64,000 bases of DNA, from NCBI GenBank assembly GCA_047495785.1, contig JBLDXI010000010.1, positions 434,001 through 498,000 on the forward strand, read 5' to 3'. The translations under genes were made by a program, and so were the position numbers. Below, piece after piece: positions 36,141 through 61,372 of this stretch. This stretch comes from Lepidodermella squamata (taxonomy: Eukaryota; Animalia; Gastrotricha). The first letter of the stretch is position 1, and every line of letters begins with the position of its first letter. The notes beneath the pieces were generated by a model. That model was not told the DNA's origin, made no database searches, and saw nothing but the letters and a program-made list of their open reading frames with translations.

Positions 36141-38790
36141 CTAAATGTCAACATTTTTTGTCATCGTTTGAGAAAAAACCGTTGAGAACGTGCCGTGAAA
36201 AAAATAAAAGACAGGCATTTTCTGAATTTCTCGTTTTATTGATAAATTAATGATTGTCAACATTTCCATCATCTCCGCCACTTGACGCTTCAAGTCGTTG
36301 TTTACATATTTCCGTGACTGCGCAGAGGTCATGCTAGGGTAGAAATTAAGATAATCGGGTAATCGCAGTGTGACGAGTGCTTACCTGAAGAATAAGCAAA
36401 CCGCTCGTAGTGAACATGACGAGGTAGGACAGCGCTTGCTGCAACAGCGTTGTCGGGTCATTGTTAGCCTGCAAAATCGGCCCGTAGTGCATGGCGTGAA
36501 CTGACCCGGGCGCATGGTGAGAAACCGCGTCGCAGTACTCGGCACACAGCGACCAGTCTTGCTGCGTAGGCTGCGCGTGTTTATACACGAGCGTTGTCTA
36601 TAAGCATAACAAACACAACAATGTAATGTGACCTAGGTTGCTAGCTAGCTACTACTCAAACAATAGGTACACCTACCTTGTCGCAGAATCCTATGACGAT
36701 TTCTTTCCGCCGGTCGAAATTGATGTCGGCGACTAGCGAAGATAGCGGCACAGGCGCAGGGCCGCATGCCGACGGCGGCCGCGGCAGCTCGCTCACAGTT
36801 TCGACGACCAGCCCCCTATCCAGGTCCAATCTATTGAGTCAACAACAAATTGCGCAATCGTAAAAACCCGGCCAATAATAAATACCCGTAAACCAAACAC
36901 GGCTCGAGTGACGGGCATACTAGCATGTTTAAGGCGGCATTTGCGTGCTCTTCAAAGAGCTGAATCGACAAAACAGGGCCGAAGTGGAGGAGCAGTAGTG
37001 AAGACGTGACAGTGACCGTTTCCGATGCGCTGTTGATATCGACCAGAGTCACGACTACCGAGCCATCGCGGTAGCCGATGGCACTCACGCCTTGAGACCG
37101 GCTCGGGTCATTTGCGCCCGGTTTCATGTGGTAGCTAATCCAAGTAACCGGAGATCTGTTGAATAAACACGTCATGCAGTGCTATTACAAGGTGGATTGT
37201 TTTACGCTTCTGATGCGCCGTTTGACGACCTGACTTGATCGAGGTGGGGCTTGGCGAATTCAGGAAAAATCGCCGATAATTTTTCGTCTTCATCAGAAAC
37301 GCGAGTGAACAGAGGCACTTCTTCGGTGAATTCCTATAAAAAAATCAATAAAAAAAATAAAAAAGTCTCCAGCTGATTAGCAGGGGGATAGATACAGCGT
37401 GTTCCATAAGTGATGCAACCAAATAAAATGCTACTTAAAATCTACCAGAAAAAATTCGGTCCAACCGGGTAAAATACCGAAAATTACCGAACCGGGTTTT
37501 TATCTAGTGAATTTTAAATTTCTTCGATAAAATCATGGAAAATGAAAGAGGAATGCTTTTAGTAAGTTCAATTTCGGAAAAATATCGAGAAATTACGCAA
37601 TCAGGAAATAGTCGCGGAAATTATGGGACACGCTGTATTAGGAAAAAACATGCGAAAAAGCGGAATTTAAAAAGGTCAGGTTAGTGAGCAGTCCAATTTT
37701 GGGTGAAATAATTTTAGAAAATTCGATTAAAAATGCAAGCTTTATCTTACTTCCTCCTGGTTTTTTTAATTTTTTGAAAATTTTAAATTGAAAAATTTAA
37801 TTATTTTTAGGAATTTCTTTCCTAAAACTTACAAGTTTGGAAACGTGTGAAAACACGTGAATTTGGCCATCCGCGCCACCCAGTAGAAAGGTCGGCCTAT
37901 CAAAGGCCCTGTCCTCGCATAACGAGGTCAAATGAGACGGCAAAAAGTTGAGTGATTGCCGATAGACCAGGCGATTGCAAGCCGTCAGAAACTGCTGCTC
38001 GCCACTGTCTTCCTTATTCTCCAACCCACTCATGTAAATGTGAAAAAAATTCGAATCAGCCGTCGTAGGCGGCCCGGACTGGGTGATGGTGTGGCTTTCA
38101 GCTTTTGTAGGCGACGGCTTCGTCACGCCGGCTGGTGGCTGGTCATTCTCGGAAATACTGTCCGTAACCGAGTCCATCCGGCTCGGACTCACCGACATTG
38201 AATTCGAATTCTGTGAAACTAATAACTGCTGAGAGTTAGTCTGCGGCTCATTTCTCGGCGCATTTGAAGTTCGAGTTCGAATCAACGAGGCCGGGTCGAA
38301 AACGCGCTGAAATTTTAAAACTAATTTTTTTTCCGAATTTTCAGTCAGCAACCTACGCGGTTATTTGCAAAGGCTATTCCAATAAAAATTTGATGACCAG
38401 ATTTTCTTTGATAGATATGGATTGAAAAAACTTCGACTGATCCTGAAAAGGAATTTTTTTTTATAATAGTGGATTTTTTTCTAATTTTTTTTTCGTACGA
38501 TCTCTGTGAGCATTAGGCCCGATTTCAGTGAAAGAAATGTCTCGTAATTGCGGTCCCCAGGCCGTTTTCGATCCAGTTGCGTTGAATTTGTCATTCGGCT
38601 TCGTGAATTTAGCCAGCGTAAATTTGCCGTTCAAAGTGCCGTACAAAAACGCAGAACAGCCAGTTTTCGGCTCGATGACAAACGGCGAAAATAGGTAAAT
38701 ACTGCCCTGGGATGGCGTCGGAAGGGCGAATAACTGATGAAATTTCATCGCAGTGTTTTTGCTTTCCTGCTTGACGGCCTCTTCTTTCAT
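36141..38790 (-). CDS. KPTN: Kaptin (KICSTOR subunit), about 8 exons; first exons 38499-38790, 38357-38442, 37833-38306
   Basis: SQGSIY, ISFTEI..VEVFSIHIY..FIGIAF, FFHIY, LNFLP..FLLGGADGQIHVF, SAIGYRDG, FGPVLSIQLF, SLEPCLVY, LVADINFDRRKEIVIG, TTSGLLILQ occur in the order recalled for human KPTN. 3' end approximate. Confidence 0.8.
37395..37635. mobile_element. Tc1/mariner-type MITE in a KPTN intron
   Basis: TA|CAGCGTGTTCCATAA ... TTATGGGACACGCTG|TA: TIR with one mismatch and a TA target duplication. Confidence 0.8.
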
Positions 38791-39027
38791 GGTATTTAGC
38801 ATAAAATTAAATACCTATTCAAAAATTCATTCGAAAACTTCAAAATAAATTTAATTTTTGAAAAACTATTTATTTTCAAAAATTGAAATTTAATCGAGAA
38901 AATTGATTGGAAATCGCAACACCGGTCCTGCAATTTTGTTTCCTTTAAATTTACAAATTTTCGAGCAATAAATCGGGCAATGAAGTCGAAGTAAATCAAC
39001 AAATTTTAAATAATTTTGTTCTGTCAT

Positions 39028-39548
39028 TTAGTTGTCGATAACACCGATGTCTTCGTTCCAAAGTGATGGATTATTTTTGATGAATTTCGTCATCAAATCA
39101 ATCGATTCCTTGTCATTGATAACTACCACCTCAACACCGCGACTTCTCAGCAGTTCTTCCTCGCCTAGGAAGGTCTCATTTTCACCGACTACAACTCGTT
39201 TGATCCCATAGAGCAAAATCGCCCCGGTACACCTATTATTAAAGTTGATTCTGCTCATTGGATTTTTTTTCTCAAATTTTACATGGAGCATGGTGACAGT
39301 GTGGTGTATAGCGTGCAATTTGCGTAGACCGAAGCCGGCTGGCGGCCAGCTCGTTCCAAACAGTCCGTTTCCCCGTGTAAAACCGCGCTGCCCTGTTGAA
39401 CTCGCCGATTATGGCCGGAGCCGATCAATTTATTAGTTCCATTGTCAAACATTGCGGCTCCAATTGGAATACCACCCTCTTTCAAGCCAGTTTTAGCCTC
39501 TTCCAACGCGACCTGGTAGTTTTTCAAATCACTGTCCCTCAAAGTCAT
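39028..39548 (-). CDS. Cytosine deaminase of the yeast FCY1/bacterial zinc-dependent type (exons 39283-39548 and 39028-39232)
   Basis: EGGIPIG, GHNRRVQ, HGE, LYTTLSPCSM|CTGA, GEN..F and WNEDIG; removing a 50-nt GT-AG intron (39233-39282) restores the PCxxC zinc motif. Confidence 0.9.
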
Positions 39549-39906
39549 TATTGGTAAAAAAATTCTAAATTTCGAGTTTTGACATAAAAATAAATAAATT
39601 AAAATTTTTTGGCTAATTTTACCTGTCCTAATTCTGCCTGTAAGTCCAATACCCAATGATCTTGACCAGTTTGATAACAATAAGACAAAACAATACTAAA
39701 ACGTGGAAAAATCTCCGATTTTAATTGCGTATTTTTGATCAAAAAAATCACACAAAAGTACGATTAAATCGCAAATGGCTAGTCTATTGCTGAACATCAC
39801 AATAATATAACATTAATAAGTAACCATCATTAAACACGGTGTCGCGTGCATCAGATCAAAAAAAACTGATAGAAAAAAATGAGTCATAGTGATAGATTTA
39901 TTTGTT

Positions 39907-42900
39907 TCACAAATTTGGCGGCATCAATCGATCGAGTTGCTTCAAATAGTTGGCGTTGTAATTTTGCACCCGGCCGCGAAACACCGATGGCCCGATAAAT
40001 TGGCACAGACTGACGATGCAGTTCTCGCCGGCTACCAGCGCCATGTGCTGCTGGTCGACGCAGTAGAACAGCGGCTCGAGAAACGACTCCAAATGCGTTT
40101 TAAACGCCTGTTTGCCCAGCTTTTTCGCCAGTTCCGGCAGTTGCTTGCACAGGGTAGACAACAGCACCGAGTGTTGCGAGTAGTCGCGGCGGGATGTCGC
40201 GGTTACGACGTGTTCGACGGCTTTTCCGACGTCGGCCGGCGTGAGAAGGTCGCAGATTTCGACGAAGAGGCAAATCGCGCCGTCTGTGAACTCCCACGGC
40301 TCGGCGGCTCGGCAAAACCGCCGCAGGTGGGTATTACAAGCGTCGCCGTCTTGATCACCCCTGATTGCCTAAAAATTAGACCACAACATCATTTTATGGA
40401 AAAAGAGTCAACAACTTTCCATTTCAATCTCAAGAATCTATCAGTGCGAATTTGTGAATTTTCCTCAAGTTGTCATCAAATTTGATTTTTTTAATTTACG
40501 TCAATTTTCGGTTGAATCGTTGATGGAGATTCACACTTTTCAAAGAAATAAATCCAACTCGCTAGGGCTGTTCCCTAAACTTGTCAGCATCCCACGAGCC
40601 TTGCTAAAAAAATTAACCATTCCTTATTTGAATGATTGATTGAAGCTTTGATTGATATTTTTTTGCATGAATTATTTTCTAGCCGGATTGCTTTTCGGAG
40701 CTGCCCTTACGGCTGCAGCTTCCAGCGCTTACCACGTAATATCGCGATATCGCGATCGCCGGGACCTGATGAAAACGCCGTGGAATTGGGACTCGATATC
40801 AAACGACTGACGAAGCTTCTGATGGCCCCGCGTACCACACGCAACAGGCCTATAAGCTGAGGAAGATGATGGAGGCTGACCCTGAATTTTACGAGGAACT
40901 TTATCGCATTGTGAACATATGGAATCGTTTACCGCCTCATATTTTCGACTTCGATGATAATCTGCCTCTTACTTCGAAGAATGCTTTATTTAAAAACAAT
41001 CTTGATCGTGTGAACTTATTGCAATACTGCGAAGGAAACTTGATATCAAAAAATAGTATGCTATTCCGATTAACGATGAGCTTAGTTGACGAAGTTCGTC
41101 GCCTTATTAAGCATGTTATCAAGAAAAATGACACTGTCGTCGTAAAGGCGAAGGAATGTTGTGGAGATCTGCAGACATTCATCGACAGTTATCTGAGCAA
41201 AGTGGAAGAGGCGAGTGATAAGTTAGATGAGTGGGTCGTTTTCAACTGGTTTTGGTGTTGTAGGAGGAGAAGCAGATATATTCACACCCCGAGATCGAGT
41301 CAACAGCGATGACGGCAAATTTAAGGCAATTTTGAGTAAATTTTGAGTCTTTATAGTTGCGCTGCTTCATTTAGTTATAACAAAGCGGTTGCTCGCCGAA
41401 CGCAATTGGGCTGCAAAGCCTTTATGCATTTCACCTTGGTCGTGGCTGCACATGACTGTTTTGTCGCCATTCGCAAGGGTCCTCAGCCCCACAACCACGG
41501 TGACGATGTCAACAAACAGGGAAGCGTGATGCGCTGTCTTCGACACGATGAAGAAACTCTCAGGGCCGTTGAAGATTTCGCCAACACGAAACTATCTGCC
41601 GTTGAGGTTTCGATGAAGTCGTGTCTAACAGCCCTAAAGCGGAAACTTTCCTAGGCGGATCGTCGCATATGCCCAGACCAGGTCGACGTCTACAACTGCC
41701 GCAGCAGTCAGTTTTACTAGATTATTTATTGTTTTCAATTAAATTTAGATAGCACAAGGTCGAGTTCAGTAGCGTTGAAATGTTGGTCGCTGAGGACCAA
41801 AAGAAGCCCCAAGAAGAGCAGCAAATAATTCATTATACCTCCGGCGATTCACCCACGGGCTTTGTCCTGGGTGTAATGACTCCGTTGCAACAGGCGCTCG
41901 TGGCTTCTAACGAGATCCATGAAGTTGGCTATCTTGACGCTACCTTACTAAGACGTTACTAAGCATGATTACGCCCTAAATGCGAAGTCCAGAAGAGTGT
42001 GGAGAAGGTTTCTGTCTAGGCACACTGCTTTCTATGCTAACTTTTACCCCAGGCAACACTACATTTAGATTTACTGCATGGAAAGCGGCTGCTTTCTAAG
42101 CGCACTTCTCCTCCCGAAAAATCAAACGGATCAAAGACAACCAAAAAGTCTTTTTCAACATTTCGAGTATTGCTCGAATGCCAGATTCCTGCCAAATCTC
42201 GCCTATTTTTGTTAACTCTTTCTACCCCTTTCTTCTTCTTCCAGTTACTCGTGAAATGACTTACTCGAAGCTCGAATAAGTAAAATTCCACCTCGGAACA
42301 AAGTTAAATCACACTTAAGGGAAGCCGAGTAGCCTGGGTATTGAGGTCTCTCGAAGGTGGCGGTTCGAAGCCTCATCGATGGTGTCAACAAGATTTTGTC
42401 GATTTGGCGAAAAATCACGAATCTATTCCCGAAACTGATCATAAGGCTGCGTCGTAAAACCGCGCGTTGGCAATCAAAGACAAGAATTTCCAATCGTTTT
42501 TGCTACCAAGAAATTGCCTAGCATTGCTGAACACGGCGGCCCTCTGCATATTGACGGGACCTACTAACTTTTCTACTTTTTTACTACTGCATTATTGACC
42601 TGTATGTAGCGTGTTACATATCTTGATATGCGTGTACTCGAAGAAATAACCAAAGCTAGCGCCCCGGTTATCGTTTCTGAAAAATCGCAAATCAATTGAA
42701 AATGCATTTGCGCGGGAGTTTGTGAAAGGCAAATCCGGAATCCGGAAGGAAAAGCTTTCACTCGATTACCTTGTTGAAACAAGGAGAATCTGTCCGCGAA
42801 TTTGAGTCCAAATTTTTGATCAACGAAGAGAGAACCAGCTGCCAACTTTACTCGAAGCCGCGAAACGTAGAAGAGGCCGAGAGTGATGACGCGAGGTACA

Positions 42901-45900
42901 TTCAGATGTTGTGAGTTGAAAGTACTGATTACAAAATTTTGCAACTCTCACCTTCATTGCACTAAAAACAGCTGCTGCTGTCACGGTAAAGAGCCCGATG
43001 CGAAATGCCCACGATTGCAGCTCGGCTGCAAAGCTTATTATTCGTTTAAAGCGGGAAAAAGGAAGTCACTGAAGTTGTCCTTGAGACATCGGATAAGGAA
43101 AACACTTTTCACCCTGAGGCTGTATCAGTTGTATCTGGTAAAACTTCGGATGACTACATCGATTTACTGAGCACAGTTAAAACGAGTTATGAACGTGTTT
43201 TTGGTACATTTTAGCATTTTTATTTTCATCACCGGTACCGTGGCCGAAGCAACCCGCCGCGTCGCCAAAATAACTTCAATTTTTATTTTTATCTCCCGAT
43301 CAACCTTTGACGAATTGCGACAATTAAAGTATGACCAATATTTTTTTTGCCTCGCATTTTTTCAATAACTTCGTGACCATGAGGAATTTTTTGGAGCGGT
43401 TTTCACCATTTGATAAATCAGGTCTTCGGTAAACTTTCCTCAAATTTTCGTCAAAATTGGTTCAGAGCGAAGAAATTGGTGACAAAAATGCCGTTTGCGG
43501 TTTCAATTAAGAATTCTCATTTTTGAAAAATGGCATTTTTGCGTCCAATATGGCAAGAGCTGATCATCACTCTTCCCTGAGGATTTGAGCCGTTTGAGAG
43601 ATGGCCTGTGACTAATCGGAGTCACCGATTCCAAAAAAGAAATCATACGACTGTCCGAAACTTGCGGCATCACCAGGTTGGCACAGACCACTCAAAAAAA
43701 TTCAAAAAGCCATTTCGGATCGCTGTTGGTGGATAAGAACTTTTCTGTGGGTGTCAAGATGAATTTCTCTGTTGGAGACGTGTTATTGATCTAATTCCCA
43801 ACGAAGAAAAAGACCGAATAAAGCTTTTCCACAGGATGATGCCGCCAAACCAAAAAACCTGAAAAATGCCATTTTTCAAAAATGAGAATTCTTAATTGAA
43901 ACCGCAAACGGCATTTTTGTCACCAATTTCTTCGCTCTGAACCAATTTTGACGAAAATTTGAGGAAAGTTTACCGAAGACCTGATTTATCAAATGGTGAA
44001 AACCGCTCCAAAAAATTCCTCATGGTCACGAAGTTATTGAAAAAATGCGAGGCAAAAAAAATATTGGTCATACTTTAAAACGTTTTCGGTTTGCTACGTT
44101 TACTCAGCTTTTTGCTACAATACCTCGGATTTGCTACGTAACACCGGGTGGTGCTTCATTCAATTATGAAATATACCCAACGAAGCTCCGAGATTTAGCT
44201 CCGAGCTCCGACTCTTTTTCATTCATTTTACAACGATTTCTATGGCTGTGTTACTCATATATATTTTTTAAAACTTACAAAAACATCTTTATTGACGAAT
44301 CGATGAGCTTCATCCGGCTGGTCCTTCACAGCTTGCAGGCCTTGAAACAGGTATTTCTCGACAACAAGCGTCAAAACTTCGCCCTTGTAGGTCCGACAGA
44401 CCGCGGCTAATGCCACAGCAGCCCCAGCTCGAACCGACGGTATGTTATCCCGCAAATTCTCCGCCATCAACTCGACAATTTTATGAACATGCGGCTGCGA
44501 TTCGCTGGGGAAATTCGCCACAAATTTGCCACAAGCCTGGCACGCGCCGTCTCGAACAGGCCAACTGTCGTCGGAAAAACACACGATCAGAGTCTCGAGT
44601 AGGCGAGAAACATGGCTTGACACGACTTCTCGGTTCATTTTCACCGCTAATTCAGCGATACAGCTGATCGATGCCTCGCGTACAGCGTGATTCTTCGCCT
44701 CGCACTGTTCGACGTAGAAATCGACAACGGCTGGTAGGAATTTTTCGACCAGAGATTTTCCCTCGCCTTTCGTCACCAATTTCCACGTTTCTTGCGAGTA
44801 GTTACGCACGCCTTCGGCTAAATGATAGCGATTTAGGCAGAGGGGCGGGAGAAGGATCGGGTAGAATTCGAGTCGATCTGCTTCGTTTGGCAGTGACTGG
44901 AAGAAATTGCGAGACGCGACGCAGGCGGCCATTCGAACGTGACTCCAATTATCAGAGAGGCCAATCCGCAATTTCGGCACGATTTTACTCCGCAAGTCAG
45001 CTTGATGACCTAAAATTAGAAATTTCGATAATATAGCGTGAAAATCTTACTAATTTCAAATTTTACAAAATTATTCAAATTATTCCGAGTTGAAAATTTG
45101 AGATTTTAATTTTCAATCGGCAGTATCAAACATTTTGCGAACTAAATGTTTCAGGTCTACCAATACTGCCCACAATTTACTGAACAGGCAACTTTTACGA
45201 CGATCTGGCGAGGTACAGTGGAACCTATCGCTGCAAGTGCTCTCGGCAGCCGTTGTGCGGGGTGAGCTGCGGCTGCTTTATCCGCTGTTAACCGGATCAG
45301 TGGCAGAGCAGTCGAGTTTTCAGAAAATCTCCGTCCTAATATTTATTGGTTTCGCAACCCTTAGCATCTGCCAGAGAGCGAAGTACCGCATGGGATAGGA
45401 TATCAATCCCATCTCGGTCCATGCGGTGTATAAAACCAAATACCAAAGGTGTTGCTTTTCATTGCTGACGTTACTTGTCACTTTTCGAATTTACCCGATA
45501 CTCATAATCATAGAATGAGAACTGACATTTCGCAGACTTTGAAGGTACTAGCCAAAAACGGATCACTTTTGCAATACATGGGTGACAACTGGGAGCTTGA
45601 AATGGCGAAAGGATTGTATGGTCGAGATATTAGTGTTTATGAGCGAAAGCACAATGTTGTTATTCGCAAAGATTGGACACTGGAGGAAATTCAACGTAAG
45701 GCGATGGGGAGAGGCTTTGAGGAAAACGTATACTACACGTTCCGAAGCCCGGAGGCGCATGACGATGAGTTGAAGGTGGCCCTTCAACCGTCAAAGCATA
45801 GGCTCAAGTATTTGCCGCGTTATTCACCGCATTCGCAATGGAGGTGCAAAATGCCACTTATGAGGTTATAGAGCAGCATCAAGGATTTCGCTATGAACTA

Positions 45901-58826: not shown

Positions 58827-61372
58827 TCAAAATTTGTGAAAAATCGGATTGCCATGGGGGCACTGAAATGAGGCAAATTGGTTTTTGTTACTATTATCAC
58901 CAGTAACTGACAAAAGCAGTTGATTTAAATACTCTTCGTCCTTTTTCGAGCCAAATTCTTTGTCACTAGATACAACTGAGCTAATGCCCAACATTCGTTC
59001 GACTTCGCCTCGGAAATATTCGATAACAACGCGAGGTCTGCAATTGGCCAATGTTGCTTTCGAGCCCGAACCCGATTGTGAGGCCATCATAGCTTCAACA
59101 ATTTCAGCGACTAATGGTCCAATTCTATCAGGGGTAGTCAGTGAGAATTCTTCAGGTAACTCAGGCGATTGTTCGACTTCGATGTAGCAACTTGACATAG
59201 GCTGACTCCCTAAATTTTCAAGTGAGGAGCTCAGCGATAATTGGCTGCCTGAATTCGAAGAATAAACGCGAAGTTTGAAACCATTAGCCTGAAGCCGCTG
59301 ATCTATGATCGTGTTGAAAAGAGGTGGATTTGACGGTTTTGAAGGCAGATTTCCAAGAAAAGCAAGTTGACTAGCCGTCAAATAGCGACCGAGTGAGAAA
59401 TTATGACCAAGCGATCTTTTAGGAACGTTAACACTAGCCATCATTGAGGCAAATAGAGCAGTTTCACTCAGCCGCTGCGCCGAACAAACAGCTAAGCGAG
59501 ATTTCAAATCGCCGATTTCTTGCCGAAGAATCAGCAAAATGAAGCTGTGACCTCTTGCCAGTTTAAATCTGCCAATTTTCGCCCATTTACCGTCATTAGA
59601 AGTGTTTTTCAGTCGTTTTGGATTAATGAGGGAATGGCGAAGTTTAACCAGCCAATTATTTGAGCCGATACCTTCAGCCTCAACATCAGGTCGGCTCCCA
59701 ACTTTTTCTCTCAGATCGTCGTCAACCAAAATACGCCGTTTCGTCGCCAATTTTTCCGACCGTTTCTGAAGAGCGGCTGCTAATCTCTGACTCAAAGTAG
59801 GCGCTGATGACTCGGGCTCAATAAATATAGAATCTTCGTCGGCTGATTCTTCTTGCGCGTCGATGTCACGTTTTCGATGAGTTTCGTGAAGCTGGGACAA
59901 AGATAAGGCCCAGTTCGAAGTTGCTGGCCTAGCTGCCGGAATTTCTTGCCTTGGCTCGATGATATTCACGGGTTGAATTTGCGGACCTAACGCGCGACCT
60001 CTGCTCCACTCCAAGGCACTGAATCGAGCTGGATTAGGCTGGACGGACTCTTTCTCAAAACCCGCATCGTCTTCAATTTCTTCTTCTTCATCCGTATCCT
60101 CCGAAATTCGATTTCTTTTCTGTTTCTTCTTTTCGATCGCAACTTCAGGGTTCTCCCAGAATTGAACATCGTCCTCTTGAATCGACCTTTTCGGAGCAAT
60201 CCGATTGCTGGACGAAGATAAAACCGGGGTAGAATTCACCGCAACTTCGCTGGTATTACCTGCGATAAGAAATTCTGTGATTGCCTCTTTGATGGCTTCC
60301 AGAATCGGCTCTTTGCCAGTTCCGAAGTAAACTTGCTGTTTAGCCACATCAACGTTCGCATCGAGAGAATTCCTCGGAACTGTTAGTTTCACACAGCCGA
60401 GAGGAAAACCTGACTTCGCATATAGGCCACTCTCCGAATAAGCAGATTTTACGACTGATGTTAAATCTTTGTCGCGAATCGGGCGATTATTCACACAGAT
60501 GAAAAGAGAATCGGAGGATGAGCGGAAAAGCAGAGATTGTCGATCAGCAGATATTCTTCCTCGAGGTAGGTAACATTCCAGGGCGAAACCAGGTTCCCCA
60601 AGCAGCTCGTCCTGTTTGAGAGCGTGGAAATCACTTGCACTAATAAGTGGCCCTCCAATCAGTGCCAAGACGGTGGGAGCTGTAAATCCGCTGGCGGTCT
60701 CCCACAGAGTAGTTGGCGAAGGACTAGCATGTTTCAACGAAATGCGGCAGTTAAGCCGACACAATGAGAGACTAGCAACGATCGCTCGACATTGAGACAA
60801 GGTATCTCGACCACGTTGCTTTGACTTAGCGTAATATTCCCGTCTGACCGGTAATGGTTGAAAAAGTTTGCTGACCAAGACCACAGTTCCGGATTGCATG
60901 GCAACAATACTCGGCGAGCCAAACCTGCGAACTGATCGGTCAAAGACGTACCGTCGCCCGTTTGGTTCTCCGGGACAACAAGTTGCAATAGTGAGCTGAC
61001 CGGCTACAGTGGCGATTGATGCTGCAGAAACGAGAAATTATTTCGAGCAAATCAGGCGAATAGAGAATTACCTAACGCCTCCCCGCGGAAACCATAAGTT
61101 TCGACTTTCCCTTCGACTAAATCCGCAGCTGATTTAGCTTTGGATGTGCAATGATGTTCCCCAATCATTGACATTGAATCTTCAGGAATCCCACATCCAT
61201 TATCGGCTACCTCAATAACGCCGATACCGAAATCTTCCAACTTTATTGTAATTCGAGTGGCGCCTGAATCTAGAGCGTTCTCTGCCAACTCTTTAACAAC
61301 AGAACTTGGACCAACTACAACTTCCGTTGAGCCAATCAAACGAATGCATTCGGCATCTAGCTTGAGCAGCAT
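58827..61372 (-). CDS. PMS1: MutL homolog, PMS1 type (exons 61072-61372 and 58827-61021)
   Basis: GHKL ATPase motifs VVKELAENALDSG, DNGCGI, TYGFRGEAL; PMS1-type WSRG, CRPRVVIEYFRGE and CPHGNP; no DQHA endonuclease motif and no MLH1 FERC end. Confidence 0.85.

Follow-up and report, generated by a model that had tools for sequence, protein, structure and literature searches.

To our knowledge mammals have no cytosine deaminase, and this lack is the textbook basis of both the selectivity of 5-fluorocytosine (5-FC) for fungi and the cytosine deaminase (CD)/5-FC suicide-gene system. An animal with an Fcy1-type enzyme of its own would be an exception to the rule of 5-FC selectivity. For foreign metabolic genes as such there is already good documentation from several lineages of small invertebrates.

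Saccharomyces cerevisiae Fcy1 (PDB entries 1uaq, 1ox7 and 1p6o), a single CDA-fold domain of 158 residues, is one of the described systems with which the gene reported here can be compared. This gene lies in the window, by which we mean the whole stretch of 64,000 nt that was analysed, and its product is likewise predicted to be a single CDA-fold domain, of 156 residues. The zinc site (HGE and PCxMC), N51, F114 and the W-x-E-D-I-G lid of the yeast enzyme are identical in the two proteins, and the loop from PIG to GHN (the pre-GHN loop) has the same length in both. They differ in that their identity is just about 55% in the alignments, and in that the window gene sits in an animal genome and carries a coding intron and a 5'-UTR intron. 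TadA and ADAT2 have the same fold and the same H-x-E/PCxxC zinc site, but they lack the W-x-E-D-I-G lid of Fcy1 and their E-values with exon 1 are 16–18 orders of magnitude weaker.

A precedent for a small bacterial-type base deaminase of the CDA fold in animal nucleobase metabolism is provided by gda-1 and gda-2 of Caenorhabditis elegans, CDA-fold guanine deaminases for which transfer from a bacterium to a nematode has been proposed (PMC13419446). These enzymes belong to the B. subtilis GuaD-type subfamily, act on guanine and occur in another host phylum, and they have been tested genetically and biochemically (PMC13419446), whereas the window gene is known here from its sequence. The significance of the present case is limited by this nematode CDA-fold guanine deaminase of proposed bacterial origin (PMC13419446) and by the foreign metabolic genes mentioned above. 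If the reading set out below is true, the animal would carry a counter-selectable marker of its own and its drug sensitivity would be predictable. The gene would also show cleanly how a foreign metabolic gene can gain spliceosomal introns, one of them in the middle of a catalytic motif.

Structure of the deaminase gene

Contigs from four coded sequencing runs, all obtained in one run search, were aligned to positions 37500–42000 of the window. Run X1 is from organism A (2024), X2 from organism B (2015) and X3 from organism A (2014), and X2 and X3 stem from different studies. X1 is DNA-like, and X2 and X3 were taken as RNA by a guess that their splicing backs. The deaminase gene lies on the minus strand and has two coding exons (39548–39283 and 39232–39028), which splice into a coding sequence of 471 nt for 156 residues, from an ATG at 39548–39546 to a TAA stop codon at 39030–39028. 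In the 5' to 3' direction its parts are as follows.

39623–39662, minus strand: non-coding 5' mini-exon of about 40 nt, placed by the X2 loose end behind 39662
39565–39622, minus strand: GT-AG intron of 58 nt in the 5' UTR, placed by the X2 joint 39564>39623, with CT..AC ends
39549–39564, minus strand: 5'-UTR stretch of 16 nt from acceptor to ATG, placed by sequence and the X2 joint
39283–39548, minus strand: coding part of exon 1 (M1–S88 and the 'AT' of Met89), aligned to yeast CD 11–91 with E 2.7e-23
39233–39282, minus strand: phase-2 GT-AG intron of 50 nt in the Met codon of PCSMC, placed by sequence and the X2 and X3 joints
39028–39232, minus strand: coding exon 2 (last base of Met89, C90–N156 and the stop codon), aligned to yeast CD 94–157 with E 9e-14
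38873–39027, minus strand: 3' UTR of about 155 nt, its end estimated from X2 contigs and depth

The first-pass annotation, made from the letters of the DNA, had reported a full set of FCY1-type catalytic motifs, and all of them are found in the 156-residue product: GHN at 45–47, HGE at 58–60, PCSMC at 86–90 and WNEDIG at 147–152. Exon 1 holds residues I29, N47, H58-G59-E60, T82, S85 and C87, and exon 2 carries C90, which is the second zinc cysteine, as well as F110 and the lid W147-N-E-D150-I151-G152. After the split Met codon, exon 2 reads CTGAILLYG...WNEDIGVIDN and then TAA. The sequence of the coding intron (39282–39233) is GTAAAATTTG...TTTAATAATAG (GTAAAA...AATAG), its 3' part being also written AATAATAG. 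At the other end of the gene, the transcript-like X2 contigs stop at 38873, and beyond a point near 38859 the depth of X2 drops from 140 to 11. ATTAAA at 38894–38889 and AATAAA at 38874–38869, read from the sequence, are candidate poly(A) signals of the 3' UTR.

Splicing, expression and variation

A 50-nt spliceosomal intron within the Met codon of PCSMC and a possible second intron in the 5' UTR had been proposed at the outset, and the contigs bear out both. The coding intron is skipped exactly in X2 and X3 contigs (joint 39230>39281, with depths of 100 in X2 and 7.6 in X3), and this joint can be shifted by 2 nt, which gives CT..AC on the plus strand, or GT..AG as read along the gene. X1 retains the intron, with a variant at 39265 inside it; this run has no splice joints in the deaminase gene and shows depth in 30 of 30 bins across the locus. 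The 58 nt of the 5'-UTR intron (39565–39622) are skipped by an X2 contig. A second X2 contig skips 62 nt at the same intron, with TT in between, and is an allelic form or the form of another strain.

The listing of exonic positions at which other strains differ from the window has seven entries, of which six are synonymous changes at the third codon position and one is R118K. The coding sequence has a GC content of 47.6% and a GC3 of 52%, and its codon-preference score falls inside the range of 12 long host ORFs. Because the X2 and X3 contigs are spliced and six of the seven differences are synonymous, we conclude that the deaminase gene is transcribed and under purifying selection. It is a real gene, intact, correctly spliced and expressed in its host.

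Assignment to the Fcy1 family

When exon 1 was searched against the PDB with phmmer, the best 13 sequences were all yeast cytosine deaminase (1uaq, 1ox7 and others), with E of about 3e-23 (2.7e-23), and were followed by TadA and ADAT2 at E 2.6e-07 to 3.6e-05. Exon 2 matched cytosine deaminases alone, at E of about 1e-13 (best 9e-14). The best animal protein among the PDB hits was human ADAT2, with 27 bits as against 85 bits for yeast CD. The alignment of exon 1 with yeast CD 11–91 is free of gaps and that of exon 2 with residues 94–157 contains one. In the HMMER alignments with 1uaq and 1ysd, the yeast residues I33, N51, H62, G63, E64, T86, S89, C91, C94, F114, W152, E154, D155 and I156 are all conserved; outside the zinc motifs they correspond to I29, N47, T82, S85, F110, W147, E149, D150 and I151 of the window protein.

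The Pfam domain found is dCMP_cyt_deam_1 (PF00383, E 3e-13). The NCBIfam TadA model NF008113 gives exon 1 a score of 34.5 bits against a cut-off of 150, and two close relatives scored at full length, P0060 and P0002, reach 67 and 60 bits against the same cut-off. From the PDB matches, the conserved residues and the NF008113 score, the protein is Fcy1-type by every sequence-level criterion and fails the TadA test, and the first-pass annotation, which had named a grouping with ADAT2 or TadA as one outcome that would speak against it, was right to call the gene FCY1-type. The prediction of an FCY1-type cytosine deaminase with the CDA fold and a complete active site is well supported by sequence.

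Relatives and distribution

The word-indexed search with exon 1 returned more than 8000 relatives, none of them above 75% identity, and the window genome's own protein was absent from the set. The best full-length matches are bacterial proteins of 145 aa named 'nucleoside/cytosine deaminases', with 66–72% identity. The best of all, P0060 (71–72%), is encoded between YcaO/TfuA and LPG-synthase genes and is bacterial by virtue of this context; P0009 and P0091 also have clearly bacterial gene contexts. A scan of bacteria with one genome per species found at least 595 carriers of the deaminase family in 11 phyla, the best named match being from a Pontibacter MAG (71%), and a metagenome scan found 80 loci, each at most 72% identical to the window deaminase.

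HMMER was run exhaustively against 1.84 billion cluster representatives and picked out 378 clusters at E ≤ 1e-30, of which some could be given names, about a quarter of the database proteins being named. The named eukaryotic relatives are from the eustigmatophyte Nannochloropsis (66%), the chrysophyte Chlorochromonas, the streptophyte alga Netrium and the basidiomycetes Lactifluus (63%), Cubamyces, Cylindrobasidium and Obba, with fungal identities of 51–63%. The eustigmatophyte and bacterial bit scores are nearly equal (211 versus 214–223). Since there are named algal clusters, the family is wider in eukaryotes than the fungi, and the initial statement that this type occurs in fungi and bacteria, correct for both, was too narrow in leaving out Nannochloropsis, Chlorochromonas and Netrium. 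No animal-named homologue was found among the best 120 of each of two hit lists or among 30 clusters whose names were looked up, in all of which names are sparse, and a search of the available literature found no report of an Fcy1-type cytosine deaminase in an animal.

The bacterial deaminases of 145–158 aa (P0060 and those of Pontibacter, Acidimicrobiales and Saprospiraceae MAGs) combine the highest full-length identity, 66–72%, with the WNEDIG motif, and they are the most likely donor pool. They differ from the window gene in being intronless, in that most are without the 8–11 N-terminal residues, and in a pre-GHN loop of 12 residues in place of 14. The Nannochloropsis oceanica 'cytidine deaminase' (166 aa, cluster P0028/P0002) is the product of a eukaryotic nuclear gene with 66% identity, is a neighbour of the window gene in both careful trees described below, and also has a lengthened pre-GHN loop. 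On the other hand its gene has no intron, the loop is of 17 residues, the lid reads WEEDSG and the grouping is weakly supported.

In the window protein the pre-GHN loop spans residues 31–44 (39424–39465) and has 14 residues, AAMFDNGTNKLIGS. The same length is found in yeast Fcy1, as against 12 in 221 of 226 close hits and 17 in Nannochloropsis. The most similar loop (NTNKLIGS) is that of P0289, a protein with a signal peptide and a bacterial gene context that includes SLT, UDG and RNase HII genes. With the closest loop in a bacterial protein, the length of this loop was rejected as a marker of eukaryotes or of a lineage.

Two further loci were noted in the course of these searches. The AT-rich Logan contig L001 (positions 1–1097, 32% GC) encodes an intronless deaminase of 163 aa, P0001, that is 66% identical to the window protein, and the ORF adjoining it is apparently split by a 60-nt GT-AG intron; L001 may come from a second eukaryote with an Fcy1-type gene. 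A tblastx comparison of L001 with the window for synteny matched the deaminase alone. In the Nannochloropsis-type genomes of L171 and L085 the intronless deaminase gene adjoins the gene for the ribonucleotide reductase large subunit, so that two nucleotide-metabolism genes are adjacent. In L171 the called product of the reductase gene has 1465 aa and includes ankyrin repeats.

Origin of the gene

Three maximum-likelihood trees were computed under LG+C20+F+G4 by PMSF from an alignment of about 150 columns. In a quick tree of 184 rows, the clade that holds the gene is a mixture of bacterial and protist sequences (SH-aLRT 73–90). In a careful tree of 93 rows, it groups with P0002, of the Nannochloropsis type, and with the long branches P0299 and P0278 (support 87/81); the next branch outward pairs an Acidimicrobiales MAG with P0033, and the one after it pairs a Planctomycetaceae MAG with P0060. 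The last tree was computed after the rows P0299, P0278, P0320, P0326, P0367 and P0307, six long branches, had been dropped. Without these six the careful tree retains the same neighbourhood at weaker support (68/77, 63/83 and 52/84), and the quick tree places the gene directly with the Acidimicrobiales/P0033 pair. In none of these trees does a clade with strong support include the gene, which changed its place from one run to another.

Horizontal origin of the deaminase gene is the best explanation overall, and one that we hold with fair confidence. The gene would have passed into the animal lineage from a microbial donor, the likeliest being a bacterium that has the 145–158-aa type, while an alga or a fungus seems the less likely source. 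Introns and UTRs of the host type would have been added afterwards, and the composition of the gene would have come to match that of the host. The original proposal of horizontal acquisition stands as probable in so far as bacteria are nearest (72%), and it is weakened by algae (66%) and fungi (63%) that are nearly as close and by the AU test given below.

The careful trees seat the gene beside the Nannochloropsis-type sequences P0002 and P0028 (87/81 and 68/77), and the Nannochloropsis-type bit score is almost that of the best bacteria. Both observations would suit a donor among the microbial eukaryotes, such as an alga or fungus in the animal's diet, the enzyme and its function being the same. 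However, the tree support is weak and the first of these groupings included long branches, and the identities to algae (66%) and fungi (51–63%) are below the values of up to 72% reached by bacteria. As to introns, the Nannochloropsis deaminase gene has none. The gene of Cylindrobasidium torrendii (L172 1501–2182) has three, of which one, in phase 0 between the M and the C of PCPMC, lies 1 nt from the phase-2 intron of the window and could be taken to favour a fungal donor, whereas the introns of Lactifluus and Cubamyces are elsewhere, with none at this site. The near-coincidence in Cylindrobasidium is read as chance, its odds being roughly a few per cent once it is considered that about six positions of fungal introns were compared, and an intron position in common with fungi was rejected, as Cylindrobasidium alone has one nearby, 1 nt off and in another phase. 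The 50-nt intron of the window resembles the host's own introns. We consider a eukaryotic donor unlikely, while giving it some weight.

An ancient eukaryotic pyrimidine-salvage gene that descended vertically and was lost in most animals, without any transfer, is an improbable source. The family is found in fungi, stramenopile algae and a streptophyte alga, and an AU test in which the gene and all seven named eukaryotic homologues were held as one clade left that clade unrejected (delta lnL 29.8, p 0.195). The unconstrained trees, in contrast, scatter the eukaryotes among bacteria and split the fungal sequences into three places, no animal-named homologue appears in any list (names being sparse), and many independent losses across Metazoa would be needed. 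A functional, expressed FCY1-type enzyme that reached the animal from a microbe by horizontal transfer, the microbe being most likely a bacterium, is the reading in which we have good confidence.

Proposed function

By homology with the yeast enzyme, His58, Cys87 and Cys90 would be the zinc ligands, Glu60 the proton shuttle, and Asn47 and Asp150 the residues in contact with the base, in a pocket that would be closed by Ile29, Phe110, Trp147 and Ile151 together with the C-terminal helix. We infer from the sequence a catalytic activity on cytosine, namely the hydrolysis of free cytosine to uracil, and by analogy the enzyme may also convert 5-methylcytosine to thymine and 5-fluorocytosine to 5-fluorouracil. 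Its putative physiological role would be to feed cytosine from the diet or from turnover into pyrimidine salvage. Sensitivity of the animal to 5-FC is a prediction.

The database names of close relatives vary ('cytosine/creatinine deaminase', 'nucleoside deaminase', 'tRNA-specific adenosine deaminase') and the pre-GHN loop exceeds that of 221 of the 226 close hits by 2 residues, so that one might think of an Fcy1 fold with some other substrate in vivo, such as 5-methylcytosine, modified cytosines, isocytosine, creatinine or a TadA-like nucleic-acid base. Such a substrate is doubtful: all base-contacting residues of yeast CD are conserved, the score with the TadA model is far under the cut-off, and the names of the relatives are automatic annotations. 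With cytosine as the presumed substrate, this may tentatively be put forward as the first animal cytosine deaminase of the FCY1 type to be described, a microbial pyrimidine-salvage enzyme whose gene was captured, gained introns, one of them in the zinc motif, and was kept under selection. Its bearer, in contrast to mammals and probably to most other animals, would then be able to use free cytosine, and 5-FC would be lethal to it; for this full set of claims we would put the chances a little short of even.

Neighbouring genes and the operon question

The deaminase gene is flanked by two genes on the same strand.

39726–40368, minus strand: last exon and 3' UTR of an upstream DNAAF5-like HEAT-repeat gene, stop codon at about 39907, from an X2 contig of 1750 nt
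37797–38802, minus strand: downstream gene of unassigned function, first ATG at 38802, from ORFs and X2 joints

Pfam matches of the upstream gene are to HEAT (2.8e-16) and TPR_DNAAF5 (5e-10), and its transcript ends about 180 nt past the stop codon at 39907. The X2 contig links 39726–40368 to sequence at about 44270 (exon 44255–44995), so that an intron of about 3.9 kb can be placed in the DNAAF5-like gene. This neighbour points to an animal with motile cilia. It speaks against a nematode, since nematodes are not known to have motile cilia or axonemal dynein assembly factors. Inside the large intron (40369–44265) there are plus-strand ORFs, for example one of 148 aa at 40866–41312 with no Pfam hit, and at 40822–41123 the DNA-like run has about five times the local depth, which suggests a repeat or nested element. 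The downstream gene has introns at 38442–38497 and 38307–38356, for which X2 shows joints that skip 56 and 50 nt and end in CT..AC, and a Pfam search with this gene gave no hit.

That the nearest relatives are bacterial might suggest contamination by bacteria or a chimeric assembly, but both are effectively excluded, because the two GT-AG introns are spliced, being both missing from transcript-like contigs, the gene has eukaryotic genes with introns on either side of it on the contig and its composition is host-like, and X1 depth is moreover present in all 30 bins across the locus. The first-pass annotation had made the same argument from the flanking animal genes, and it is strengthened by neighbours on the same contig and strand with validated introns of 50–56 nt and by the DNAAF5-like identity of the upstream one.

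The three genes are tightly packed. About 63 nt separate the 3' end of the upstream gene (about 39726) from the acceptor of the deaminase mini-exon (about 39662), and about 70 nt separate the 3' end of the deaminase gene (about 38873) from the downstream ATG at 38802. Two X2 contigs carry some 23–26 nt 5' of the mini-exon, with the plus-strand consensus AAGCAGAGCAACCAACACAACATGGG (agreement 0.67). A 21-mer of this leader has no match in the 64-kb window with up to 3 mismatches, and these nucleotides would fit either a leader added by trans-splicing or a first exon that lies very far away; no resemblance to a known spliced leader was recognised. Membership of the gene in a host operon, as had been suggested, is in keeping with the tight spacing and with a 5' leader absent from the window, but no contig bridging two genes was seen among the X2 and X3 contigs at the locus. 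We regard operon membership as plausible, at somewhat below an even chance.

An Rfam scan of the window found nothing, and an Atlas search with the window's ORF for CWC22 returned no assignment narrower than 'Eukaryota'. An ORF of 690 aa at 58827–60899 has a MutL C-terminal 'DNA_mis_repair' domain. It had no protein match at E ≤ 1e-10 among 8000 word-sharing candidates, for which reason it appears unusually divergent for a mismatch-repair protein, and an exact look-up was also empty.
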